A stretch of DNA of 64,000 nucleotides from Anthoceros angustus (lineage: Eukaryota > Plantae > Anthocerotophyta), in NCBI GenBank assembly GCA_010909165.1, contig MU008179.1, forward strand, positions 868,001-932,000, read 5' to 3'. Position 1 is the stretch's first letter. Every line of letters starts with the position of its first letter. Both the position numbers and the translations under genes were made by a program. A model generated the notes under the pieces. The model worked only from the letters and a program-made list of their open reading frames with translations. It made no database searches and was not told the origin of the DNA. Positions 1 to 50,560 of the stretch are shown in pieces.

Positions 1-3000
1 AAGAGGCTCAACACACTCGATAGTGAATCTGTATGGCGGGGACTGCCGTGCTTTGGCTTCCTCTAAGTCTCTGGCTGCAGCCTCATAGTCTTCCAATATG
101 CGATTCACCTCCCCTCGGACACTGGGGGCAGCACACGTCTGTAGGTCAGGCACCGAGTTGTTTCTTGGCATGTAAGGTATTGGCCTTAGAGAATGTAGAA
201 GGTAATGGTCGTCAATAGCTTGTCTCTCAAGTGTGCCATGCTTCATTTTGGAGTAATGTTCGCTGGCATACCTCAGATAGAACGCACTTTGAGGCTGTGC
301 ACTCTCGGCTCGGTCAAGATCCTCTTTAGCACCTCGATAGTCCCCAGCGTATAGCCTTGTCAGACCCAAGATACTGCAGCAGTGTGACAGGAAGGAGTGT
401 CAATCAGTGGTCACCATGGCATCCGCTCAAGCAACTTGAGAGCCACAGCGTCATGCTTGCCTACCAGAGCGTGAAGGCAGCATCTTCCCCATGCAGAGAT
501 GTAAGAGCCTTTTGCAAATCCGCTTTAGCACCATCAAGATTACCGCTTTCCATCTTCACAGCTCCCAGCAGGCTGTGTATTACAGTATAGTCAGAGTAGG
601 TCAAGTTGCAGTGGGAAACCAGAAAGCATTTCAGGAAGTGCCACCTTAGGATAAAGGGATTCTGATTTGGACAGTGTTCAAAATCTTCCAGTGCACCCTT
701 AACCAGGCCCAGATTCCACCTCAGTAGACCTCGACAGCTACAAGACGGGACAACAATGTGAGCATTGGTACGAGGGGGAGACTTTCAGGAAAGTGAGCCA
801 GAGCCTTCACGTTGCCCCCACCCAGAGATAGGGCAGGTTTCTTTTACTACGCAGTTGCACCAAAGATCTACCTCAAGAATATGCTGGTTTGCAATGGTAA
901 ATCATCCGTCAGCTCAAGTTTGGCCTTCTCCCAGTCTGATATGCCCATCATGGCAGTGCCCAAGAAGCTGCAAACATAGGAATGCAGGACTTCTCACGAA
1001 CTGTTGTCATCTCCATATCTGGAACAGGATAGCTGAAGATAGAACGTCTCTGACCTTAGGGTGAGTGAGTCATCAGGATTTAGCCTTTTTGCTGCTCTCA
1101 AATTATCCACTGCATCTTGGTACTCTCGGAGTGTGAAATAAGCAACTCCTAAATTCCTGGAGACAAGGAACAATATGGCTTACTTTTTCCTGCAGCTACA
1201 CTGGTGCAGGAGGAAAAAATTCAGACACGGTGTACGTTACCTTAGTGTTATAGGATGTTCAGGTTGCAACCTATTGGCCTCCTTAAGGTCCACCAAACCA
1301 TCTCTCTCCTGAGTTTGTATCACCTTAGCTAAACCCCAGGAGCGTAAAGTGGCAGCAAGAACCCGCTTCTTTAAAGTCAAAAGCTCCTCATCCGTCAGGT
1401 TAGGGCTTAATTCACTCGTTAGGACTCCCACTTCGGGAATTTCACCTTCCAAGGTCTGAGAGAAGACTCTTCTATATATATCACATTCAGGAACTCCAGA
1501 CAGTAATCTTGCACACTGTGAGACAACTGTAACGTGCCCATAGGTGAGGAGGAAAGCACATAACAGGTGGATTCTGTTGCTACTAGGAGATGCCATCGGA
1601 GAGAGGTATTTTTTCTGAATCAGAAAACTATCCTGACAGCGACAGTCCTGTGACAGGTAATCGGTGACAATGGGATGCACTCGATAGAAATCCTGCATGA
1701 AGTGGAGTCCGATCCCAAGGGAATTTCATTACTACATCACACAGCTGCCCACTTCTGTCTAAATATCGACATGAACCGAATTTGACTCACTTTTGTCCGC
1801 TCCAGAATGTGAATCCCTACAAATGCTTCGAACTCCTGATCAAAGGTGGCCTCATCAACTGGAGTGTCCATGCAGATTGTCCAAGCCAGCTTCACAAGGT
1901 TTGTTGGAATTTCTGTCGCAGATCTGAACAAGCCAAAAGCGGTAAAAGCCTGTTTACTACCGGAACAGGCAGCAATACTAGATTTAACCCCACGAAACAT
2001 AGTGCTTGCATAGCCATCCATGGACTGTCTCTGCTCTGCATGCAAGCCAAACTCGTCAGCAGCCTTTTGCCATTCCCCAGGCTGAGTCTTATTAAGTACA
2101 GCATTACCCATCACAGTTATTGCTAATGGGCAACCATGGCATTTGGCCCGAATCATCCTAGCCGGGACCTGCACAAGAAAAGGATCATACTGAAGGATGA
2201 AAGGAAGAAAGAACCGTGCCAAAACAGATCAGAAACCATACAACCCAAATTACCTCAAGATTTGTAGGGACGACTGATCCTCTATCAGCACAGCGTAACA
2301 ATATTTTCTCATCCAGGCTCTCATCCATGTAGTCTTTTGGGCTGATCGTGACCAGCTTTGAGCATTTAGACAACGGATCAGGTGACCTAGTTGTGATAAG
2401 CAGATTTCCGGGGTGTTGTTCAAAGCAAAAGTTCTCCCGAATGCGTGGATGCCAAACATCATCCAAGACAATCAAACAACGGAGCTTCAACGGCGTTTTG
2501 CGAAGAACGTCCTTTATCTCTTTTATCTTGGAGCTAGAGGGCATGCTTCCGTCCCAACTCATCTTTCTGCCCACAAACCTCAAAATACGTTCGAGTTCAA
2601 CACATATCTTGTCATCAAGTGCCGTCTGAGAACAAGTAGTGCTATATTTTTCACCAAAGGTGATGAAGTGCACACCACCAGGGTAGTCAAAGCCTGCACT
2701 TCCGCCGTAAGAAACACACATCAAGAAACCATACAACAAGTTCTTGTCACCTCGCCGCGTCAAAAGAATCCAGCAATTATCTGGGCCGAGCCAAGCAATT
2801 CACCGTGGTCATACAATCAGAACCCTGGAATCTGACCAGTACAGACTACACTGCTTACCCGCTCTGAGAGTAGAGGCCAGCTCCAAAGCTAGAGCTGATT
2901 TTCCCATGCCAAACATGCCGGCAATGATCACAGTTTGGCCGCTCTCGTCCCTCAAATACTGCAAGAGCTCGTCGTGTAACTTGCTGACTTGCAGGTACTT

Positions 3001-3483
3001 TGGAGGGAGCTTCTTCTCCAAACTCCTCTGCTGGATGTCAAATGCCTTCAGTCTTTTGGCCCGCACCCTGCATTTCCGCAAGTCTTTACAGCATTTGTTC
3101 AGCACGTTGCTAGGAAGTTGTTTTCGGTCATCCTCAAAGTTGTAAACCACGAGATTCTCTATTGCTAGTTTCTCCGAAAACCCCATCTCCTGCTCCCTCC
3201 GCACGAGATCTCCAAGCCTTTTGTTCACATCCCGGATGTTTGTCCGCACAGCTTCCAACGCCGTTGCGTCCTCTTCGGTCAGTTCTCCTTTCCCCGACGA
3301 TTTGTGTCTCTGCACCTGCACGTTGATGAGTTTCTCCTTCTCTTCACGCACTTGCTTGATGGCAGTATTGAAGTCCTGATAGCCGGAGGGCCTTGCTGCA
3401 GCTGCCAGTCTTTCAAGCTCCTGTAAGCTGAATTCGATGCCGATCAACGGATCCTCGCCCTTCCGCCGCCCTGCAGAACCCAT
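1..3483 (-). CDS. Multi-exon NB-ARC (STAND NTPase)-TPR protein with an N-terminal helical/coiled-coil domain; the 3' end probably runs off the window
   Basis: Manual splicing with GT-AG sites: exons 3483-2859, 2693-2254, 2168-1791, 1692-1241, 1156-1055, 967-872, 737-645, 572-465, 373-272 and 121-(<=17). NB-ARC motifs: P-loop GMFGMGKSALA, kinase-2 CLIVLDDVW, RNBS-B LLITTR, GLPL-like GCPLAI, MHD-position VHPIV. C-terminal TPR-like units include NLGVAYFTLREYQDAVDNLRAAKRLNPDD, LLGAVKMESGNLDGAKADLQKAL and ILGLTRLYAGDYRGAKEDLDRAESAQP. Confidence 0.85.
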
Positions 3484-4719
3484 CTCAGGAATCGAATTTC
3501 TTCTCACCTCCTCGAGACCAGCTCAATCCATCCAAGCACCGGGCTGGTGAGCACAATCCCGTCGAAAACGGAGCCCATAAATCTGAACACGAGCCAGACT
3601 TGCCGCCTTGCCAGTCTCGACGTGCCGGAATTCTCGATCTGCCCTAACCAAAAACCGGAGGAGCGAGGAAGCTTCTAAGCCGGCGAGATGGCCCCATGCC
3701 TGTGCATGCACGAAGCTGCTGCTGGCATTGCTTCCTTACGAGGTGCAGAGCTTATTGCCAGATCTCATCTTGTGCATGTACAATTCTCCTCCGTGTGTTT
3801 GTGCTTGTGACGTACAATTTCACTGTGATTGTGGTTGACCTCTAGCCTAGTGCTTTTCCATGCTCCTTGTACATACTTACCCTTCAACCTGCCTTACCAT
3901 TCCAGTGATCACTCTGTACGTGTCCGTGATAAGGACAAGGAAGACCCTCCAGGCTCATGAACAACATCACTAAATCATGTAAACTATGAGTTCAATACCC
4001 AAACCGGTTCTCGCAAAACAGCTTTGAAAGCCCTTCACACCGTGCCATCTGCCCAGAACCAGCGGTGGGTTGGTTGTGCATTAAATATCAATAAGAAAAT
4101 TCATTCTTATTTTAAATACAATTTATATTTTATTGAAATAAATATGATAAATATAAATATTTACATTAAATATATCTTATAAGACATGTACAACAAGATT
4201 GGACAGAATAAGCAATATCTACATCACCAAACCATCCAAAACTCCCACCATATTGACAAGACAACAGCAATACCAAACCATCCATAACTCCCACAATATT
4301 GAAAAGACCTTGTGAGCTGCATGAAGTTCATCCTAATTTGTTTAATTTCACCTTAATCTCAATCCACGATCTGCCGGAGCAAGGAATTGTTGGCGCAGAA
4401 GCTCTCAGCTTGATTTGCTGCCGGTACAATCAAGGAGTCAATGACTTCACATTACTTACAAATCTGGTGGCACATTACTTACAAATCTGGTGGACGAAAG
4501 ACAGCAGAGCTTGGAATTGCACGAAGAGAGAACGTACACTGGTACAGGTACAGCGTACATAGTTAGCACTCACCAGCGAGCCTGTGATGAAGCCGTCCCT
4601 CAGTTCTGTTTAGTCCCTCGGTAGCAAGGAACAGGCATAAGCCACAGAATGACAGCTAGGGTTAGTAGGAGCAAGGAAGGTGGAGGTGGAATCTGTTAGC
4701 TTGACTGCTGCCGCTATAA

Positions 4720-5310
4720 TCAAGATTCAACCACGTTGTAGTGCAAAATCTTGTGGAAGAACCACAGCAGAGCTTGCGACACCACACGAGATGATGAACA
4801 GCGTAGTTGGCATTCACCGGCGAGCCTGATGATGCCGACAACTGTAGAGTGCCCAAAGGTGAGGAGGAAAGCAAATAACAGGTGGATTCCGTTGCTACAA
4901 GGAGATGCCATTGGAAAGAGGTATCCTTCCTGGAACAGAAAACTGTTCTGACAGCCACAGTCCGGTGACAGGTAATGTGTGACAATTGGGTGCACTCGAT
5001 AGAATTCCTACATGAAGTGGAATCCGATCCCAAGGGAATTCCATTACGGAATCGAACTTTTTCTCACCTCACTCCAGACCAGCTCAATCCAATCCAAGCA
5101 CCTTCCAAAGGGATTACAGGATCGATCTATATATGTACAAAAATATGCGTAAATTCGGATAAACCGGAGCCCATAAATCCGAACACCAGAGCCTTGCGAA
5201 AGGAGAAGGCCAGTCTCGAGGTGCCGAGCTCCGCTATCTGCCCTAATCAAGGAGAGGAGGAGCGAAACTGGAAACTCGTGAGCAGGCGAGCTGCTCCCAT
5301 GCCGGTGCAT
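4720..5310 (-). pseudogene. Deletion-derivative paralog of the NB-ARC-TPR gene: 5' region fused to the post-NB-ARC exon
   Basis: ~5049-5310 aligns by eye to ~3490-3710 (GACCAGCTCAATCCA..., GGAGCCCATAAATC..., CAGTCTCGA). ~4780-5048 aligns to ~1500-1735 (GATCCCAAGGGAATT; HPIVTHYLS vs HPIVTDYLS). The junction near 5048 removes the whole coiled-coil and NB-ARC region. Confidence 0.75.
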
Positions 5311-5317
5311 TGACGAA

Positions 5318-6301
5318 ATGGTAGGTCTGACAGGAACAGCAGCGCGGCACTCCGCAGATGATGCGAGCCGGGTGGTGGTGATTTTGGAGACCAATCCTCA
5401 CGTCTGGGGCAGGCCGGCCGCCTCTGGTGGCGGGGCAACGGGGGCAGGGGCGGCGTCCGCTCCGCCGTTCCATCGCGTTCTCCAGGATGTGCTTGTGTTC
5501 GTGAACTCCATTCTGCTTCTGCATCATCTGAACGAGGTGGTGCTGGTGGCCACGGGCTCCAGCACATGGAAGATTCTGTACGATTCTTCCGCGCGGGTGG
5601 GCAGCGCGGCGGGGAGCGTCAGGCTGACGGGGGTGAGCTCCGGCAAGGCGCAAGGGCAGCAGCCGCAGAGCGCGCCGGTGCTGAAGCGGCTGGAGGAGTT
5701 CGTGGGCGAGGAGGAGGCGGCCTGGAGGCGGCAGGGCGAGGGGGAGGGCAACCGGGGGTCGCTCCTGTCGGGAGCCCTGTCCATGGCTTTGTGCTACATA
5801 CGCAAGAGGGCCAGCGGGTCGGGGTCCTCTCCGCAGCTGCAGCCCAGGATTCTGTGCGTGCAGAGCTCCCCGGACGCGCCCCAGCAGTACGTGGCTGTCA
5901 TGAACGCCATCTTCTCTGCGCAGCGCTACGACGTGCCCGTGGATGCGTGCATGGTGGGGAGCCAGCACTCGGCGTTTCTGCAGCAGGCGGCTCACATCAC
6001 GGGTGGGGTTTACCTCAAGGCCCAGCAGTGCGAGGGGCTGGCGCAGTATCTCATGATGCTCTTCACCACCGACCTGGGGTCTCGGCAGTTTCTGCTGCTG
6101 CCGTCCTCGGCCGGGGTGGATTTTAGGGCTTCCTGTTTCTGCCACAAGAAGATCATAGACATGGGCTATGTCTGCTCGGTTTGCCTTTCCATCTTCTGCA
6201 AGTCCCAGCAGGTGTGCTCCACCTGCAGGGCTGATTTCACCTCCAGCAAAGGCGCAACCCTGCATCCTGTGGGCAAGAATGGGGTACAGACAGACAGATG
6301 A
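5318..6301 (+). CDS. TFB4: General transcription/DNA repair factor IIH subunit TFB4 (p34/GTF2H3), single exon, 327 aa
   Basis: vWA-like segments VVVILETNP, SLLSGALSMALCYI, QYVAVMNAIFSAQ and FLQQAAHITGGVY, followed by the C-terminal zinc finger VDFRASCFCH...GYVCSVCLSIFC...CSTC, all characteristic of Tfb4/p34. Confidence 0.95.
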   Translation: MVGLTGTAARHSADDASRVVVILETNPHVWGRPAASGGGATGAGAASAPPFHRVLQDVLVFVNSILLLHHLNEVVLVATGSSTWKILYDSSARVGSAAGSVRLTGVSSGKAQGQQPQSAPVLKRLEEFVGEEEAAWRRQGEGEGNRGSLLSGALSMALCYIRKRASGSGSSPQLQPRILCVQSSPDAPQQYVAVMNAIFSAQRYDVPVDACMVGSQHSAFLQQAAHITGGVYLKAQQCEGLAQYLMMLFTTDLGSRQFLLLPSSAGVDFRASCFCHKKIIDMGYVCSVCLSIFCKSQQVCSTCRADFTSSKGATLHPVGKNGVQTDR

Positions 6302-6600: not shown

Positions 6601-8335
6601 CTAAGGTGCCTTGGACTTCGTGCTTACTTCCTCGGCCTTGGAAGCAGCTTTCTGCTTCGAGGCAGTTTTCTTCTTACGCCTCCACTTGAGGTAGAGTTGG
6701 TAGCTCAATCCAGTGAACACCATGAGCACACCAGTCCACTGCTGCGGGCTCAGTGGATTGCCCCTCCAGATAGCAGAAACAAGGATGCTCACAAACTTAC
6801 GGGTGGTGGTGATAGTCGTGTTAGCCAAAGAGCCAAAATGCTTGATGGTGAGGAAAATGAAGTTCTGTCCAACAGCTCCACACAGGCAGAAGACTAAAAT
6901 ATCCCATGCCGCTTCTGGGTGTTGACGACAGAAGTCCACAGCAGCGAATCCACCACCTCCTTTCCAGGCAAAGAGATACAATCCCATGTATAAGGCCCCC
7001 CAGAAATTCATCCCCAACATGATCTGCCAGGCACTCGTCTTCGGATACCTGCGGACATGAAGAAAACAAGTAGACTCTGTCACTGCTGGTTTTTCCCAAT
7101 ACATAGTTAGGCGCACAAAGAAGCTGTAAGGCTAAAGTATCTTCAGGAACCAGAAAGCAACCAACCGTGTAGTACCTTTGCGTTATGGCGTCTTGTGTGG
7201 CATTCGTGAAGCCATCCATTCCAAGATTTATAAAACAAAGGGTGTACCCCAAAGGCATGTTCGGGCTAGCTAGCTTCCCAACTACCTTAGAAGAGCTCTG
7301 CAAAGGAACAACGTTAGTGTAAGCATATCAAGAAAGCAGTGATCAGATTTGGACAGCTAAATTGCAGCAGTGTGACCTGGAAACGACCTCTACTTCAGAA
7401 CAAACCTTAAAAAGAGCAAACATTGAAACACCACCGGCGACGAGGACGGAGCACACATACTCAGGTATGGTGTAACGCACTCCATACACCACAGCCCCCA
7501 TCAACATGACTGAAATCACACACCAAGAACATCAGCAAAAACTGCACAAACACAAGTCGTCAAAGGGTCATCACGCATGAAAATCCAAGCTTAAAAACAC
7601 ACTTCCGAGCCCTTGCGACAGATACCTGGAATCATCTTGGAGGACTTGGCCAGGACCTGAGTATTGTGAGGACCACGGAAGCCATTGTCAGAACACTACT
7701 CCGTCAACATTATTTGCATTTAGTATCTCAGAGTTAGAAACCTTGTTCCAACCTGTGCAGGGAAGCTGATGTACTTCAAAGCTTGAATTCCACAAGACGG
7801 TCCAATGGAGTTCGTAATGCTCGGACTCCAGTACGCCCATATGGGAGCTTGAGATGGAGAAGACGCAGACCAAATGGAAAGCACTGTTCTCCACATGCAC
7901 ATAACCCCACGACAGCCATGAGGAGGACGAAGCTAGCCAATACAACAATCCCACATTCTTTCCGTCACCATGCCCTGCTCAAGGCGTATACAAACACACC
8001 AAGAGAATGATCTGCAACACGTTCTTACTCAGAAACGACCAGGCGAAGCAGACAACAGTCTGAGCGAAATTCAGGAACGGAAGGTGCTCGAACCGTCGGC
8101 CATCGGGTCCAAAACGCTTTGTTGACCTGCCAAAGCACAGCCAGCACATGCTTGATCAAAATTGCCTCCGTCCGAAGCCAGCTCAACACAGCCCCCTGAA
8201 CCCTAGCCACAACCACGCCAAACTCCACCCAACGCCGACTCACAAGGTCTCCTGAAGCACGCCCTGAGTGACATAGGCGCCCCAAATCCCGGCAACGCAA
8301 AACGACAGCAGCAAAACCCGCCTCGCTCCCTCCAT
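6601..8335 (-). CDS. UTR3: UDP-galactose/UDP-glucose transporter, UTr1/UTr3 (SLC35B1) family, multi-exon
   Basis: Spliced translation begins MEGARRVLLLSFCVAGIWGAYVTQGVLQETL-STKRFGPDGRRFEHLPFLNFAQ. It continues ALKYISFPAQ-VLAKSSKMIP, LGMDGFTNATQD and GAVGQNFIFLTI...TTITTTRKFVSIL. These closely match plant UTr3 as recalled; the C-terminal tail is lysine-rich. Confidence 0.92.
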
Positions 8336-25678: not shown

Positions 25679-26264
25679 CTTCCAGCAGCCCCCAACATGC
25701 AACCTGTTTTTCAAATGGTGGGGACTCCCCCCAGATAGAGCAGATTTATCTTTACCTGCAATCCGGCGGTTGACCACAGAACTCTCAATGTTTCTGCAAT
25801 ATTTCCTCTCGACTGTGGACGAAAGCACCGCCAAATACCTCTTACCATCTGGCAGTGTATGGTGTTGCCTGACATTTGGCCACAAACTGGAAAACCAAGG
25901 AGAAAGGGGTACCCCCCTTTCTCCTTGGAGAGGAGGAGGCCAACCACATGGACATGTGTGATGGAGAGCAAGAAGCCGGAGGTCACATCCACATGCATGA
26001 GGAAGATTAAAAGAGTAGCATGGGATAGGGACAACAGTAAAGGAGACAGTGCTCACCACGTTGAACTGTGAGCAACATGTTGAATTTAGGATAGACAGTT
26101 TTGTAATGACCCAATGCTTATGTCTGGTACGCGAAATTCCACGACAGTTCGAATCGGGCCGGAGCCCTAACCCCAGGTGGCTAGAAGAGGACAAGGGTGA
26201 CACCAGTCGGTCGCGCGGTGCCCGAAGAGGCGGTGCCACAGTTGCGCGGTCCCGCAGTGGGCCT

Positions 26265-26485
26265 GTGCCGCGGTGGGGAGGTGCACCGGTGGGGAGGTGC
26301 CGCGGTGGGGGGGCGGCAGTGGGGGGCCGCAGTTGGGAGGTGCCACGGTGGGGAGGTGCCGCCGTGGGGAGGTGCCGCGTGGGGAGGTGCCGCGGTGGGG
26401 AGGTTCCGCGGAGGGGAGGTGCCGCGGTGGGGAGGTGCAGCGGTGGGGAGGTGCAGCGGTGGGGAGGTGCAGCGGTGGGGCGACG
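26265..26485. repeat. G-rich minisatellite (~18-bp unit GGGGAGGTGCCGCGGTGG), followed by a 48-bp direct duplication at ~26571-26660
   Basis: Read directly; CAGTCAAACTGTGACCATGGAGCCCATGGC recurs at 26571 and 26619. Confidence 0.85.
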
Positions 26486-26967
26486 CTCCGGTGGGGGCAC
26501 AACCGCGGCACCACAATACCCTTGCCGGTCATGGTCGTCACCACCGGCAGCGGTTACGACCAAGGGTTATCAGTCAAACTGTGACCATGGAGCCCATGGC
26601 AAAGATACCTAGCGTTGTCAGTCAAACTGTGACCATGGAGCCCATGGCGAAGATACCGGACCTACCCCTAAACTAACTAGTATACCTTCAAGTACCCACA
26701 AACTACGTATAGTTTGGAAAGTAACGGTTATCAAATATGAAACGTATCAAATGTGCTGCGTGAAATAGAGCTTTAGGGTTTGAGGTTTTATGTACAGCAT
26801 GTGGCAGCCACATGGCAAACTATGACAAGCTAATAACATTACAGACTTCATTGGGAGATATTTCGTGCGGGATGAAAGGTGCATTGTTTTGCAACTTCCG
26901 GTGCCTGGCTTCATTTGTGAGAGAAATGCCTTCTCTTCTGGAGAAGGCATTTCTCTTGCAAATGAAG

Positions 26968-28535
26968 CTTGTGACCCTATGAGAGCGAGAGCTTGTGAGC
27001 GTGTGAGAGCGAGAGTCTATGAGAGCCTGAGCCTATGAGCTTGTGAGCCTGTGAGAGCAAGAGCTTGTGAGCCTGTGAGAGCGAGAGCTTGTGAGCCTGT
27101 GAGAGCGAGAGCTTGTGAGCCTGTGAGAGCGAGAGCTTGTGAGCCTGTGAGAGCGAGAGCTTGTGAGCCTGTGAGAGCGAGAGCTTGGAGCCTGTGAGAG
27201 CGAGAGCTTGTGAGCCTATGAGCGTGAGAGCCTGTGAGAGCCTGAGAGCCTGAGAGTGTGAGAGCATGAGAGCCCATGAGTGTGAGAGCCTGAGACCGTG
27301 AGAGCCTGTGAGCACGAGAACCTGTGAGCGAGAGAGCCTGTGAACGCGAGAACATGTGAGTGCAAGAGCCTGTGAGCGCGAGAGCCTTTGAGCGCGAGAA
27401 CATGTGAGCGCGAGAGCCTTTGAGCGCGAGAACATGTGAGCGCGAGAGCATGTGAGCAGGACAGCCTGTGAGCACGAGAGCCTGTGAGCGCGAGAGCCTG
27501 TGAGCGCGAGAGCCTGTGAGCGAGAGCCGTGAGCGCGAGAGCCCGTGGAGCGCGAGAGCCTGAGCGAGAGCCCGTGAGCGAGCCTGTGAGCGAGAGCCCG
27601 TGAGCGAGAGCTGTGGAGCGAGGAGCCTGTGGAGCGCGAGAGCCTGGTGAGCGAGGAGCCTGTGAGCGCGAGACTGAGAGCCTATGAGCACCTGATCCTG
27701 TGAGAGCCTATGAGCACCTGATCCTGTGAGAGCCTGTTAACGCGAGAGACTGTGAGAGCCTGTTAGCGCAAGCGACTGTGAGAGCCTGTTAGCATGAGAG
27801 ACTGTGAGAGCCTGTTAGCGTGAGAGATGTGAGAGCCTACTAGCGCGAGAGACTGTGAGAGCCTGTTAGCACGAGAGACTGTGAGAGCCTGTTAGCGTGA
27901 GAGACTGTGAGAGCCTACTAGCGCGAGAGACTGTGAGAGCCTCGTTAACGCGAGAGACCGTGGAGAGCCTGAGCGTGAGAGACGTGAGAGCCTACTAGCG
28001 AGAGACGTGAGAGCCTGTGGAGCGAGAGCCCGTGAGCGAGAGCCTGTGAGCGCGAGAGCCTGTGAGCGCGAGAGCCTGTGAGCGCGAGAGCCTGTGAGCG
28101 CGAGAGCCTGTGAGCGCGAGAGCCTGTGAGCGCGAGAGCCTGTGAGCGCGAGAGCCTGTGAGCGCGAGAGCCTATGAGCGCGAGAGACTGTGAGAGCCTA
28201 TGAGCACCTGATCCTGTGAGAGCCTATGAGCACCTGATCCTGTGAGAGCCTGTTAACGCGAGAGACTGTGAGAGCCTGTGGAGCGAGGGACTGTGAGAGC
28301 CTGTTAGCATGAGAGACTGTGAGAGCCTGTTAGCGTGAGAGATGTGAGAGCCTACTAGCGCGAGAGACTGTGAGAGCCTGTTAGCACGAGAGACTGTGAG
28401 AGCCTGTTAGCGTGAGAGACTGTGAGAGCCTACTAGCGCGAGAGACTGTGAGAGCCTATGAGCACCTGATCCTGTGAGAGCCTGTGAGCACTTGATCTTG
28501 TGAGAGCATGTGAGCGCCTGATTCTGTGAGAGCCA
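26968..28535. repeat. ~1.55-kb simple satellite built from GAGAGCCTGTGAGC(GC) units of 14-18 bp, with higher-order block duplication
   Basis: Read directly; the block at ~27680-27960 recurs at ~28190-28460. Confidence 0.92.
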
Positions 28536-31519: not shown

Positions 31520-32055
31520 TGTAAGTTGCATTGATTATAATAGAAAGTACATGCTTTTATATAGGCAAGTGGTTATAACCAATAAATGGTTGTAACAACT
31601 AAATACTTAAATAACTACTAAAAAGAAACTACTTAGTGCCTTGAGAAATAAATAATTAATTAAGTCCTAGGTGCCCTAGTGAAGAGTGCCCTAAAGTAAG
31701 CTATTTCATCACTCCCACTCACATGAACTAGGGGTGATTTATCTGACCAAAAAGAGGTCAATCTAACAAAACTAGTCCCTAACTAAGCTTCACTTAAAAG
31801 CATTAAGCAAAAAATTAAACTAATTAATAACCATTAAGAAACTCCCACTTGAAGGGAACTTAGGTGAGTAGCAAATAACCCAACTTAAGCTGATTTAAGA
31901 AAGGTAATGCTAATTAAAAATACATTTAATAAATTAATACTAAAGAAATTATTTTTAAGAAGAAATTCCATAAAATGGAAATGGACCTAATTTACAAAAA
32001 GAAAATTGAAAAGATAATAGGTAAGTTGCCCTTTCTCCTCCACGCAATCCTGACA
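31520..32055. mobile_element. AT-rich, LTR-like insert truncating the 5' part of the methyltransferase
   Basis: Abrupt switch to AT-rich non-coding DNA starting TGTAAG at ~31520. No target-site duplication could be confirmed. Confidence 0.3.
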
Positions 32056-32080
32056 GGTTGTGTTTTGGTGCAAGTCTGAA

Positions 32081-32697
32081 GGTGATGGTGATGGTGATGG
32101 TGATGGTGATGGTGATGGTGATGGTGATGGTGATGGTGATGGTGATGGTGATGGTGATGGTGATGGTGATGGTGATGGTGATGGTGATGGTGATGGTGAT
32201 GGTGAGTGATGGTGATGGTGATGGTGATGGTGATGGTGATGGTGATGGTGATGGTGATGGTGATGGTGATGGTGATGGTGATGGTGATGGTGATGGTGAT
32301 GGTGATGGTGATGGTGATGGTGATGGTGATGGTGATGGTGATGGTGATGGTGATGGTGATGGTGATGGTGATGGTGATGGTGATGGTGATGGTGATGGTG
32401 ATGGTGATGGTGATGGTGATGGTGATGGTGATGGTGATGGTGATGGTGATGGTGATGGTGATGATGGTGATGGTGATGGTGATGGTGATGGTGATGGTGG
32501 TGATGGTGATGGTGATGGTGATGGTGATGGTGATGGTGATGGTGATGTGGTGATGGTGATGGTGATGGTGATGGTGATGGTGATGGTGATGGTGATGGTG
32601 ATGGTGATGGTGATGGTGATGGTGATGGTGATGGTGATGGTGATGGTGATGGTGATGGTGATGGTGATGGTGATGGTGATGGTGATGGTGATGGTGA
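32081..32697. repeat. (GATGGT)n hexanucleotide microsatellite, ~615 bp
   Basis: Read directly; small register shifts near 32205, 32460, 32498 and 32546. Confidence 0.98.
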
Positions 32698-33879
32698 CCC
32701 GCAGCAGAAGGATACCAATCCCGCCCATGGGAGGAGGCGCCCACGTGAGGACGCCATCGCGTCGGAGTCCTACACCACGCGGTCGTCCTCCATCGCGCCG
32801 CTGCGTGTCGCTTAGCTCCTCCAACCGCCTAGGTCGTCTGGCCGTCCTTACAGAGGATAGACGCCCGAGGTCAATTTGCTGGGTGTCCTGGCAAGGAAAA
32901 CAGTGTGGTGCCCCTGCTTGCTATCTCCTACAATTGCGCTCTTGCTGCTTGTGAAGCATCCTTGCCTCAATTTGCCTCGTCCATCTACTAGCCTATCAGA
33001 AAGAAAACCCCTGCATGGCTCATCGATCTCACCTCATCGTCGGAGGAGATGTGTCTTCGAAGGTTGTCATTGCTACGGTGATGTACAGGTTGATGGAGTG
33101 GAATGGTGGATATGTTCATCCAAAGGGGGATGCGCCCTTGTGGATGAGGACGTGCCCCCTCAAGGTGCTCCTGCTCCTATAACCAGAATCTAGCAACCTC
33201 CACCAGAAATGCTTGTAGAGAAAGCTTGCTGCCTGCAACAAGTTTATGAGGAGAAGCTATAACTGTGGACAAGGGAAGGATGTTTGACTCCCCCTTAGGA
33301 ACGATTAATGGGAGTTTTTTTTGTTTTCTTTGAGATTTTGTGTGAGGAATAAGGCGGTATGCGTGGGAAATAAGGCTGGTCTGGCCAAGCCGTGGTAACC
33401 GAGACAGGTGAGGTCCGAGGGAGGGCCCCACTAGCAATGTCGGGGAACGATGGGGCTCCGGAGCGACTCCGAAGCGGCTTCGATGGAGCTTCGGAGTAGG
33501 CCTGAGGGAAGTCCGGAGAAGGGAGAGGCCTTGGGGGGTTCGGCGCCGGGGCGTAATTTGGTAAGGATGACACGTAGACGGTGGTAAGAGGACGACTGAC
33601 ATGCAGCAAGCCAAAACCTTAGAGTTGTCAACAACCATTATAGGCAGGTAGTCACGACCCAAGGATATGCGCCAAGAAAACGGCGAGCGTGAAGCTGCGG
33701 TACAAGATGCAGGAAGGTGGAAGTTACTAGCAATGAAAGGACAGCTTCCCGCACGCTGATTACGCCCAACGCCCCATTGCTGAGAGAAGGGTGTCTTCAA
33801 GCGCGACCTCCGCTTCTCCAACCGTCGCTCTTAGACACCAGCTCTACAGGCGCCTTCTTCCTCAATGAAAGGCAATACT

Positions 33880-35905: not shown

Positions 35906-36056
35906 TTCTGTGCTTTGTCTGAAGATCTGAATCCCACCCAGTCCCATACACTTTTGCAACTGGTAATTCCGAGCGGCTGGTAGCACCACATCAAATTTCG
36001 CAGTGTGTTGTTGATGAGTGATGTGTGAATGTGGCAATGGATGGTGCGTGTGACAG

Positions 36057-36829
36057 ACCCCTGCACCAAGTACCCGTCTCTGTGCAAGGACCCGGTGCTC
36101 AAGACCCCCGGAGGCCAGCAGTTCTATTTCCACGGCCACAAGGACGCCGACTTCTGCCTCGTGTCCGATGCCGACATCCATGTGAACGCCCACTTCATCG
36201 GCCTCCGCAGGCCCGACATGGCCCGCGACTTCACCTGGGTCCAGGCTCTGGGACTGCAGTTCGGCGCACACCAGCTGTACATCGGAGCCAACAAGGTGGC
36301 GCAGTGGGACGACGCTAAAGACCAGCTGGCCATCACCTACGACTCCACCCCGATCGTCCTCCCCGCCGGTGGGGGAGCTGTGTGGCAGTCTCCCGCCAGC
36401 GGCATTACCGTTGAGCGCCTGCTTGCCACCAACCTGGTCAAGATCGTAGTGGACGGAGTTGTGGAGATGCTGATGAAGGTTGTGCCAGTTTCTCAGGAGG
36501 AAAACCGGGCGCACAACTACGGTGTGGACTACAGCACCAACTGGATGGCCCATTTGGACGTGAGCTTCAAGTTGGCCAGCCTCACCAGCAACGTGCACGG
36601 CGTGCTGGGACAGACTTATGCCCTGGGCTTCAAGCTGGTGGAGAAGCTCCCCGGCCAGCTGATGCACACCATGAGGGGTGACGACAATTTCCTGGCCTCC
36701 TCCATCTTCTCGGCCGATTGCTCCGTGAGCAGGTTCGGAGGTGCAGCTGGAGACATTATTGCAAACCTCGCTGCGCTGCAATGTGGGCCTGCCAAATCTG
36801 GCACCTCTGGCATGGTCTGCAGGCGCTGA
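36057..36829 (+). CDS. Root cap / LEA-related protein (Root_cap domain), copy 1; 5' signal-peptide exon not identified
   Basis: QFYFHGHKDADFCLVSDADIHVNAHFIG...RDFTWVQALG...WDDAKDQL...HLDVSFK...VHGVLGQTY...GMVCRR-stop. The splice acceptor ends just before 36057. Confidence 0.85.
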
Positions 36830-42790: not shown

Positions 42791-44146
42791 ATGGCGGCAT
42801 CCATGAGGGTAGCACTGCTTGTAGCACTTCTGGTGGCCTTGCTGGCCGTACAGGCAATCGCCAAGGGCGACAGCAAGAAGGGAAGTGAGGAGCAGGGAGG
42901 AGGAGACACGAGCAAGAAGGGAAGTGAGGAGCAGGGAGGAGGAGACACGAGCAAGAAGGGAAGTGAGGAGCAGGGAGGAGGAGACACGAGCAAGAAGGGA
43001 AGTGAGGAGCAGGGAGGAGGAGACACGGGCAAGAAGGGAAGTGAGGAGCAGGGAGGAGGAGACACGAGCAAGAAGGGAAATGACGAGCAGGGAGGAGAAG
43101 ATACCAGCAAGAAGGGAAGTGATGAGCACGGAGAAGGAGACACGAGCAAGAAGGGAGATGACGAGCACGGAGGAGGTGAGTTTGAATCTTTGAATCAAGA
43201 GTTTGACACGCAGACGGGATGGATCGATGCCGGCGACTAGTACCTGCTGCTGCATGATCGACGAGGATGCAATATTGATTGATGTGCTGCTGGCTGGCAA
43301 ATTGCAATTGCAAGCGATCAATCTGTTAACAGTACATGGTGTGACTACTACTGGTGACAGGAACCGGAACCGGTAACCCTGCGACCACTACGTATCCGTG
43401 TGCCACGACCCGGTGCTCAAGACCCCGGAGGCCAGCGCTTCTATTTCCACGGCCACAAGGATGCCGACTTCTGCCTCGTGTCCGATGCCGACATCCATGT
43501 GAACGCCCACTTCATCGGCCTGCGCAGACCCGACTTGGGCCGTGATTTCACCTGGGTCCAGGCTTTGGGAGTGCGGTTTGGCGCACACCAGCTCTACGTC
43601 GGAGCCAAGAAGGTGTCGCAGTGGGACGACGCCCAAGACCAGCTGGTCCTCACCTTCGACTCCGCTCCCATCGTCCTCCCTGACGGAGCGGGAGCCGTGT
43701 GGCGGTCGCCCGCCAACGGTATCACCGTGGAGCGCATGCGTGCCACCAACCTCGTCAAGATTGCAGTGGAAGGAGTTGTGCAGATGTTGGTCAAGGTTGT
43801 GCCTGTTTCCCAGGAGGAGAACAGGGCGCACAACTACGGTGTGGACTACAGCACCAACTGGATGGCCCATTTGGACGTGAGCTTCAAGTTCGCCAAGCTC
43901 ACCAGCAACGTTCACGGTGTCCTGGGACAGACCTATGCCCCCGGCTTCAAGCTGCAGGAGAAGCTCCCCGGTCAGCTCATGCCCATCATGAGGGGTGATG
44001 ACAACTTCCTGGCCTCCTCCATCTTCTCCGCCGACTGCTCGGTGAACAGGTTCGGGGGTGCTGCTGGGGACATCATTTCCAACCTGGCTGAGCTGCAATG
44101 TGGCCCTGCCAAATCTGGCACCTCTGGCATGGTGTGTCGCCGTTAG
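42791..44146 (+). CDS. Root cap / LEA-related protein, copy 2: signal peptide, charged Gly-rich 13-aa repeats and Root_cap domain
   Basis: Exon 1 MAASMRVALLVALLVALLAVQAIA followed by (KKGSEEQGGGDTS)n, with a GTGAGT donor near 43177. Exon 2 begins near 43360 and is near-identical to copy 1. Two 1-bp C-run shortenings relative to copy 1 break the frame at the start of exon 2. Confidence 0.8.
42871..43176 (+). repeat. 39-bp coding tandem repeat, about 8 copies
   Basis: Unit AGCAAGAAGGGAAGTGAGGAGCAGGGAGGAGGAGACACG. Confidence 0.92.
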
Positions 44147-48849: not shown

Positions 48850-49658
48850 TTGTATATTAGGTGGATTGTGTTGTTTGCCCCTCTTCCTGGTGGATGCCCT
48901 TCGCTTGCATCCGCAAATATAGAATTTTCGGAAGGAACCCATTATACGTGTGGATAACGTCCTGAATAATAGCAATAGTCAAGTTTGCATCATTCCTCGA
49001 TTCGCAAAGTGGAGATACGCCGGCTTTCAAAGTATAATTGTGTACCATGCAGCCCACCACGTGGACCGCTATGCCCTCCTCAGTCCTTCGCCATCTCAAA
49101 ATATGCGGCAACTCCGCCTCTTCTCGATCCATCCCGTCAATGCATAGTAATATGTATTTCGAGGACAAGTAGCTTTTAGCGATGCTTCATCAACTTCTTC
49201 CTCTCGCTCATCAACCGTGTTCGATGTTTATTTAAAGCGCCCCGATATACATCTCGCTAAACACAAGATCGAACCGCTTAGAAAGGACAAGTTAGTTCCA
49301 CATGGTTAGCCCATTCAAAAATACAAACATTTTATTCCCCAACCATGCCGGAAACATGTCATCGAGGCACTCTGCGGCCAATGCCATTCCACCAAGACAG
49401 GCATGACAGGCGAGGAAGGCTCGCGCCAACCATCCGGTGTGCAACTATGCCGAGAGGACTCTTGAGCGCCGATAGCCCTTAACTCGATGGGAGGCGCGGC
49501 ATGCCGTCGCCCTAGCACTCGGGCGCGACGCCCGGCCCCATCCGCGCGAATGCCGGTGACCGGTGGGTAGGCGCCGCCGCCGCCGCCGCCGCCGCCGGCC
49601 TGGCGCCCTCCCATCGATGCGCCGAATGCCGGTGACCGGTGGGTGCGTGGCATGCCGC

Positions 49659-49701
<43 letters not shown>

Positions 49702-49717
49702 ATGGGAGGCGGCGGCA

Positions 49718-49768
<51 letters not shown>

Positions 49769-50560
49769 AAGCTAGGGCGGCATGGCGCCGCATGCCGGCG
49801 CTCTCGACGCGCTGGGCCTGCGCGCCGCCCGGCCGGCGCCTCCCATCCGGCGCCGCCCGGCCGCCCCATCCGGCTGTGGCGCGCGCCAGATGTAAGGCGC
49901 GATGCGGCTGCAGAGAGGGCGCCGCATGCCGCCTCAGACGCGCCGGAGAGGACTCTTCGTGGCGCCGCCCGGCCGCCCGCCTTTTCCGGCGCCGCCGCGA
50001 CTCAGTGGCATGGCGCCGCATGCCGCGCGCCGCCGCCGCCGCCGGCCTCTCATCGAAGCCGGCCGATTTCACAAGGCACCGGCATGCCGCCTTCATTCCA
50101 TGGCTCCAACATGGCCGCCGCCAGGAAGCTAGGGCGGCATTCGGCGCCTTTGCATCTACACGCCACGTTAGAGGGTTAGCTCTCCTAAAGAGTATGATAC
50201 CTATTACAAGATTCTATGTGAAATGACGGAGAACCGTATGTCAGCATACCTTGATCAATCCGATGACCAGATCGGATGTTGTATTTCAACCCCGCGATAA
50301 CGCACATGTCGAAAACCGGTTGGACTTCGGAATTTTCACCCTCTTAAAATTTTCTGTCCATAGCCTCAGGAAATATGCATATGACACAAACCGCAGCCCA
50401 GCTTGTTCCATGTCGTATGATACTGATTCCAAACCTCAAGTTTAGTGAATGTGTCCGGAAGGTTGTACACTTCAACGTTGGGCAACCTTTCTGCCAACAG
50501 AAGAAATGTTGAGTCCATCCACGCGATCGCAGCAAGAGCATGTGAGGATTGCACACGAGG
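48850..50560 (-). pseudogene. Degenerate DDE-type transposase (DUF7869-like pattern) containing a ~1-kb GC-rich intron
   Basis: Exon ~50560-50238: ERLPN..YNLPDTFTKLEVWNQY...YFLRLWTENFKRVKIPKSNRFSTC. Donor GTATGC at ~50237; acceptor TTTAG at ~49258. Next exon: RDVYRGALNKHRTRLMSERKKLMKHR..KYILLCIDGMD..LPH...HVVGCMVH...DANLTI...LPKILYL. Family assignment is from recalled motif spacing only. Confidence 0.55.
49480..50150. repeat. GC-rich low-complexity block of (GCC)n/(GGC)n runs and GCATGCCGC motifs
   Basis: Read directly; internal direct repeats GCCGGTGACCGGTGGGT (2 copies) and GGAAGCTAGGGCGGCAT (2 copies). Confidence 0.85.

Follow-up and report, generated by a model that had tools for sequence, protein, structure and literature searches.

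The NB-ARC-TPR genes of the brown alga Ectocarpus described by Zambounis et al. 2012 (PMC3341825) carry one tetratricopeptide repeat (TPR) per exon, with exon lengths divisible by three and each exon encoding 42 residues (a TPR plus linker); half of the 24 loci are clustered with pseudogenes, and both signs of shuffling and positive selection were reported. Among plants, the only NLR-like class described as having TPRs is that of the TNPs (TIR-NB-ARC-TPR; Johanndrees et al., PMC9806590), which carry an N-terminal TIR domain, are conserved across land plants and have a TTR motif in RNBS-B. The XTNX genes are nearly all intronless, and their nucleotide-binding site (NBS) is of half length with the P-loop alone recognisable (PMC5662649). 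Here we describe a predicted NB-ARC-TPR gene at the left end of a 64,000-nucleotide stretch of DNA from Anthoceros angustus (GenBank assembly GCA_010909165.1, contig MU008179.1, positions 868,001 to 932,000 of the forward strand), which we call the window and number from its first letter. It is probable, in our judgement, that this is an intact, intron-rich NLR-like STAND ATPase gene, that its TPR exons go back to an ancient tandem duplication of an exon-plus-intron unit and have since diverged, and that it belongs to a small lineage distinct from TNP/XTNX. An earlier examination of the letters alone (the sequence-only reading) had proposed instead that the gene may be a member of a modular, recombining family of immune receptors, citing Zambounis et al., accurately, for exon shuffling among the Ectocarpus genes.

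We read the minus strand of positions 1-4000 and checked there every exon that the sequence-only reading had listed. The predicted gene starts at an ATG at 3483, shortly preceded by a stop in the same frame, and extends past the left edge of the window. Exon 1 (3483-2859, 625 nt, donor phase 1) encodes a helical N-terminal region of about 170 residues and then the P-loop, exon 2 (2693-2254, 440 nt, phase 1 to 0) the NB-ARC core, and exon 3 (2168-1791, 378 nt, phase 0 to 0) the GLPL-type motif together with the ARC/winged-helix part. Exon 4 (1692-1241, 452 nt, phase 0 to 2) holds the equivalent of the MHD motif, a helical linker and the first TPR unit, which lies at 1341-1243, inside the exon, with no intron on its 5' side. 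The next five exons all run from phase 2 to phase 2 and encode one TPR each: exon 5 (1156-1055, 102 nt), exon 6 (967-872, 96 nt, in this case a short TPR-like unit), exon 7 (737-645, 93 nt), exon 8 (572-465, 108 nt) and exon 9 (373-272, 102 nt). A tenth exon is probable at 121-17 (105 nt, phase 2-2), where the acceptor and the frame were read and a candidate donor GT was found at 16-15 (in GTGTGT), exactly at the phase-2 position equivalent to that of the other repeats; this is probably a sixth symmetric TPR exon, with the exon that follows it lying beyond the window. All ten exons are open, their phases are consistent and all introns of the predicted gene are GT-AG. From its sequence, then, this is apparently an intact, intron-rich gene of a non-seed land plant.

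The regularity of the TPR exons is the most distinctive feature of the gene, and in this respect the sequence-only reading proved exact: the lengths of 102, 96, 93, 108 and 102 nt and their coordinates were all found as claimed, the flanking introns agree with its description of phase-2 GT-AG introns of 72-150 nt, and the sixth unit that it saw beginning at 121 has the acceptor, frame and GT described above. Each of exons 5-9 is preceded by AG, followed by GT and has a single open frame, beginning at the second base of the exon; the introns on either side are therefore of phase 2. In order, the six introns from the one behind exon 4 to the one behind exon 9 measure 84, 87, 134, 72, 91 and 150 nt. 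Five successive exon lengths divisible by three would be expected by chance with a probability of about (1/3)^5 = 0.004. The intron position is identical in each repeat, falling in the codon for TPR position 5. An exon therefore begins at position 5/6 of one TPR and ends at position 4/5 of the one after it, with the intron placed within helix A.

All searches were run exon by exon on the predicted exons, and scores were not summed. The motifs expected of an NB-ARC ATPase are all present on the minus strand and in the expected order, namely Walker A (the P-loop GMFGMGKS, 2919-2896, exon 1), Walker B (LIVLDDVW, 2475-2452, exon 2), RNBS-B with its TTR (LLITTRS, 2403-2383, exon 2), a GLPL-type motif (GCPLAI, 2135-2118, exon 3) and an MHD-type motif (FYRVHPIV, 1689-1666, exon 4). 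The last of these is a VHP variant (RVHP) that keeps the histidine, and it is followed in the helical linker of exon 4 by the motif LLCAFLLTYG (1566-1537, minus strand). The Pfam NB-ARC profile (PF00931) matched exon 3 with 25.4 bits (E 9.9e-6), above the cut-off of 23.5, and exon 2 with 22.3 bits (E 8.7e-5), just under it. The Pfam matches of exon 1 were to P-loop families alone (AAA_16, NACHT and nSTAND3), all at residues 165-207. PADLOC gave no match, and matches to NCBIfam were far under their cut-offs.

Comparison with TPR profiles likewise bore out the claim of one TPR per symmetric exon. Exon 5 matched Pfam TPR_1 over profile positions 6-34 with 29.1 bits (E 7.8e-7), above the cut-off of 27.8, and weak matches were obtained for exon 7 (TPR_9, E 0.0057), exon 8 (TPR_2, E 0.023) and exon 9 (TPR_16, E 0.0048; TPR_2, E 0.017). 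Exons 6 and 10, taken singly, had no Pfam TPR match. The HMMER check with NB-ARC and TPR profiles that the sequence-only reading had proposed thus recovers the NB-ARC domain on exons 2 and 3 and TPRs above the cut-off on exon 5 and weakly on exons 7-9. When the six TPR exons and the last 33 residues of exon 4 were aligned, all seven units, exon 6 included, fell in register; glycine is invariant at TPR position 8, and a leucine closes the unit. The units are 31-36 residues long, and a profile built from the seven matched consensus-TPR chains in the PDB with E values from 1e-30 to 1e-7. Leucine-rich repeats (LRRs) were not found downstream of the NB-ARC domain within the window, where TPR families alone matched and where the gene is cut off before its end. 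The predicted protein would thus consist of a helical N-terminus of about 170 residues, an NB-ARC switch and, at the C-terminus, at least seven TPRs of the classical 34-residue kind in an array.

No Rx_N or RPW8 match was found for the N-terminal region, and no match to a TIR domain was seen on exon 1 at E <= 1. A single-sequence AlphaFold2 model of exon 1, made without an alignment, had a predicted local distance difference test score (pLDDT) of 46 and placed three long helices at residues 12-99; it was too poor for a fold search. An upstream exon encoding a TIR was considered and dismissed, since the gene strand holds no open reading frame (ORF) of more than 123 residues, and thus none of TIR size, from the ATG at 3483 up to 5318, where the neighbouring TFB4 gene begins.

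These results bear directly on kinship with the TNPs. The gene resembles TNP/XTNX in being NLR-like with TPRs in place of LRRs, and it shares with the TNPs the order of NB-ARC followed by TPRs and the TTR motif in RNBS-B, so that a derived TNP/XTNX gene that has lost its TIR and gained introns might be envisaged, the more so as no other plant NLR-like class with TPRs has been described (PMC9806590). In contrast to that class, however, the gene has no TIR, at least nine introns, the full set of NB-ARC motifs and hardly any relatives that can be detected, whereas XTNX genes are intronless in nearly all cases and have a reduced NBS (PMC5662649). Moreover, when exon 2 was searched against 1.84 billion proteins, none of the six matches was a TNP, even though TNPs are present across land plants (PMC9806590); kinship was judged from that search. 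Based on these data, we consider descent from a TNP to have scarcely any probability.

The same search, in which exon 2 was compared exhaustively by HMMER with 1.84 billion representative proteins, defined what relatives the gene has. Its six matches at E <= 0.001 comprised two large angiosperm-type coiled-coil NLR (CC-NLR) arrays, which matched via generic NB-ARC motifs, three fragments of unnamed ORFs, 130-157 residues long, in Logan or ENA assemblies, and one protein of the trebouxiophyte green alga [Myrmecia] bisecta (WJX72_008183, KAK9820258.1; 532 residues). The unnamed ORF P0001 ends near the equivalent of the exon-2 donor position. KAK9820258.1 is the sole named match in which an NB-ARC domain is followed by TPRs, and it is collinear with exons 1-3, its residues 102-259 corresponding to exon 2 and its residues 252-347 to exon 3; the linker motif of exon 4 is also present, at residues 410-427. 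The alga's protein and the hornwort gene therefore have in common the P-loop context GMFGMGK, an FPGGV block, Walker B, the TxR motif, the GLPL region and an LLxAFLLxYG linker, after which classical TPRs begin. They differ in that identity is just 30-34%, in that KAK9820258.1 has two or three TPRs, and in that its N-terminus is short, with a fragment resembling PIF1 helicase at residues 12-62 and no helical domain. In UniRef the algal protein is named 'ATP-dependent DNA helicase'; the remainder being NB-ARC plus TPR, either this name is probably misleading or the model includes a fused Helitron remnant.

Other searches added little to this family. A word search with exon 4 had no match, and one with KAK9820258.1 returned only itself and one plain TPR protein. 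A metagenome scan with an alignment of exon 2 yielded eleven loci, none of them family members; they were ordinary bacterial NB-ARC proteins (for example NB-ARC-WD40) or plant CNL proteins at 25-40% identity, and those that were fetched (bacterial NB-ARC-WD40 proteins or plant CNLs) were at 25-30%. The large clusters of the ESM Atlas nearest to KAK9820258.1 contain generic bacterial NB-ARC/TPR proteins and serve as a lead only. We accordingly group the hornwort gene, KAK9820258.1 and a few unnamed fragments as what is probably a small and very divergent NB-ARC-TPR lineage, apart from the TNP/XTNX genes, which bear a TIR and lack introns in nearly all cases.

Among solved structures, the best-scoring NB-ARC domains for exons 2 and 3 and for KAK9820258.1 were those of plant CC-NLRs and Apaf-1, all of them weak, with E values of 1e-3 to 0.1 for the exons. 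Canonical CC-NLRs (ZAR1, NRC1-4, ADR1-like) thus resemble the gene in being among the top solved NB-ARC matches and in having a helical N-terminus, but the scores are weak, and here there are no LRRs within the window and no similarity to Rx_N or RPW8. The bacterial and fungal NB-ARC-TPR STAND proteins (AfsR/SARP-type regulators, fungal NLRs and antiviral STAND proteins) share the design of a switch plus a TPR sensor, but the present gene differs from these in its plant-type introns and plant neighbours.

The neighbours place the locus in a land plant. On the plus strand, and divergently oriented to the NB-ARC-TPR gene, lies a TFB4 (TFIIH p34) gene at 5318-6301, a complete, intronless ORF of 327 codons (Pfam Tfb4, E 1e-88). 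Its best named relatives, from Sphagnum (a moss), liverworts and a lycophyte, are 51-55% identical, and its best unnamed relative is 65% identical. The sequence-only reading had taken the host to be a green streptophyte, which the identity of TFB4 with its moss, liverwort and lycophyte counterparts supports. Beyond TFB4 follows a multi-exon gene for a UAA-family nucleotide-sugar transporter (6601-8200, minus strand; Pfam UAA, E 7e-28 on the last exon). Since the NB-ARC-TPR gene shares this stretch with plant TFB4 and UAA-transporter genes, the locus is in a land plant; bacterial contamination or recent transfer was rejected on account of the plant-type introns and the plant genes alongside. 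Several introns are usual in the TFB4 genes of plants, and the intronless copy seen here may be a retrocopy.

A truncated relic of the NB-ARC-TPR gene was found at 4837..5317 on the minus strand by blastn and tblastn, and its breakpoints were read. In it, a stretch resembling promoter and 5' untranslated region (matching 3714-3488) runs straight into the last part of intron 3, followed by the first 170 nt of exon 4 (together matching 1732-1522 at 88% nucleotide identity by blastn), and the segment equivalent to 3487-1733, from the ATG through exon 3, is missing. Over 58 residues the relic is 74% identical in protein (tblastn), so that 88% nucleotide identity stands against 74% protein identity and its changes are mostly amino-acid-changing; judged by these changes, the relic is probably decaying. 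By eye we also noted, immediately downstream of the relic at about 4400-4840 on the minus strand, two similar segments in tandem, each of about 235 bp, with shared stretches around 4830-4790 and 4595-4555.

With a degraded partial copy adjoining it, a family almost undetectable in other plants and no close orthologue in the word searches or the exon-2 search, the gene itself might be taken for a young pseudogene, not expressed or already decaying, in which the open frames have so far escaped disruption. Against this, its ten exons are open, its nine introns are canonical GT-AG and all of its ATPase motifs are intact, and the relic, by contrast, differs mostly by changes that alter amino acids. 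We therefore hold a young pseudogene to be distinctly improbable and continue to regard the gene as apparently intact.

The question of whether the symmetric TPR exons are, or were recently, exchanged was addressed by comparing them with each other and with the rest of the window. The seven TPR units share 20-43% of their residues, and their pairwise nucleotide identity of 46-62% compares with 54 +/- 5% for shuffled sequence. No relationship is seen among the introns, any two of which have at most 9 matching bases in local alignment, and blastn detected no similarity between the exons. A hidden Markov model (HMM) of the unit, run against all stop-to-stop segments in six frames across the 64 kb, returned the seven known units only, and hence no cryptic, inactivated or antisense TPR exons in the introns, on the opposite strand or in the rest of the window. 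Intron 9 was considered as a hidden degenerate TPR exon and rejected: its 150-nt frame is open, but it has no match to the TPR profile and no usable acceptor. Because of the low identity of the units, the unrelated introns and the lack of spare exons in 64 kb, the array is read as old and diverged. In its sequence it looks like an old tandem duplication of an exon-plus-intron unit and not like currently recombining cassettes, and that duplication is the best explanation for the layout of one repeat per exon with phase 2 at TPR position 5, the copies having since diverged almost to the detection limit.

The proposal of a modular, recombining family was therefore not upheld, the TPR exons being old copies with nucleotide identity at the level of shuffled sequence. 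Its premise stands in part: symmetric 2-2 exons do permit skipping, duplication or swapping without a frameshift, but there was no sign that shuffling occurs. Membership in an actively diversifying family of immune receptors whose TPR exons serve as cassettes, to be duplicated, swapped or skipped as proposed for Ectocarpus, would be in keeping with the symmetry of all TPR exons, by which any rearrangement keeps the frame, with the truncated duplicate 1.3 kb upstream of the gene, and with the sensing of pathogens by bacterial NB-ARC-TPR proteins, as cited in PMC9806590. The Ectocarpus loci are indeed alike in having an NB-ARC domain followed by TPRs, with one repeat per exon of a length divisible by three. 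In contrast to them, however, the units here are of about 34 residues and old, and spare exons (inactivated or antisense), a hallmark of the Ectocarpus loci, are absent from the 64-kb window by the unit HMM. The pattern of 42-residue exons in 24 loci, half of them clustered (PMC3341825), is not seen in this window, the introns are only 72-150 nt long, the DNA of the repeat exons shows no more similarity than shuffled sequence does, and the exon-2 search detected no sequence relationship to the Ectocarpus proteins, none of which was among its matches. On balance we think an actively diversifying family of this kind unlikely. That the symmetric exons serve as cassettes through regulated exon skipping or intron retention in this gene, or through exchange among paralogues elsewhere in the genome, seems to us highly improbable. 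If such use of cassettes were real, a land plant would have a TPR-based, combinatorially varied intracellular receptor together with a previously undescribed helical signalling domain, in parallel to the proposal for brown algae. Caution is warranted here, for one repeat per symmetric exon can simply preserve, in frozen form, the way an array arose; by itself it is no evidence of a generator of diversity.

Several observations weigh against our preferred reading of an intact gene with an ancient, static array in a small and separate lineage. The first residues, about 170 in number, have no family match in Pfam, and the ESM Atlas gave no usable match for them. The splice sites, the expression and the true start of the gene are predictions from sequence, and its 3' end falls outside the window. 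Two of the introns, intron 7 (573-644, 72 nt) and intron 9 (122-271, 150 nt), are divisible by three and have no in-frame stop, and isoforms retaining either of them, with 24 or 50 additional residues and the frame kept, are possible; the TPR profile does not match the translation of either intron. The relic shows that at least one local event of duplication and decay has taken place, as a birth-and-death family would leave, and the census of paralogues was confined to the 64-kb window. Finally, the databases appear to hold no close relatives of the species, the best TFB4 match being at 65%, so that the small number of relatives found does not equate to a small family in hornworts.

Elsewhere in the window, two paralogous ORFs with the Pfam Root_cap domain lie about 7 kb apart on the plus strand (36029-36829 and 43400-44146; 266 and 248 residues). 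Across each of them runs a long ORF on the opposite strand, probably an artefact of composition. Long simple-sequence tracts at 31955-32954, about 26000-27700 and about 49300-50230 give rise to spurious long ORFs on both strands; they consist of runs of di- or trinucleotide type, with poly-His, Ser-Pro and Ile-Thr ORFs, and of GC-rich Ala/Arg/Gly runs.

By analogy with STAND/NB-ARC proteins, from which the whole of the following mechanism is drawn, the TPR solenoid would act as sensor and autoinhibitor, holding the switch off until a ligand is bound. The NB-ARC domain would be the ADP/ATP switch, undergoing nucleotide exchange and oligomerisation, and oligomerisation would bring the helical N-terminal domains together to give the output signal. 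On the same analogy, a role in immunity is plausible. Together with its relative in a green alga, the gene suggests a second class of plant NLR-like proteins with TPRs, one that has no TIR, many introns, complete NB-ARC motifs and an unclassified helical head. Such a class would give the early history of intracellular receptors in plants a further branch, and its N-terminal domain is a candidate new domain for signalling or cell-death activity.

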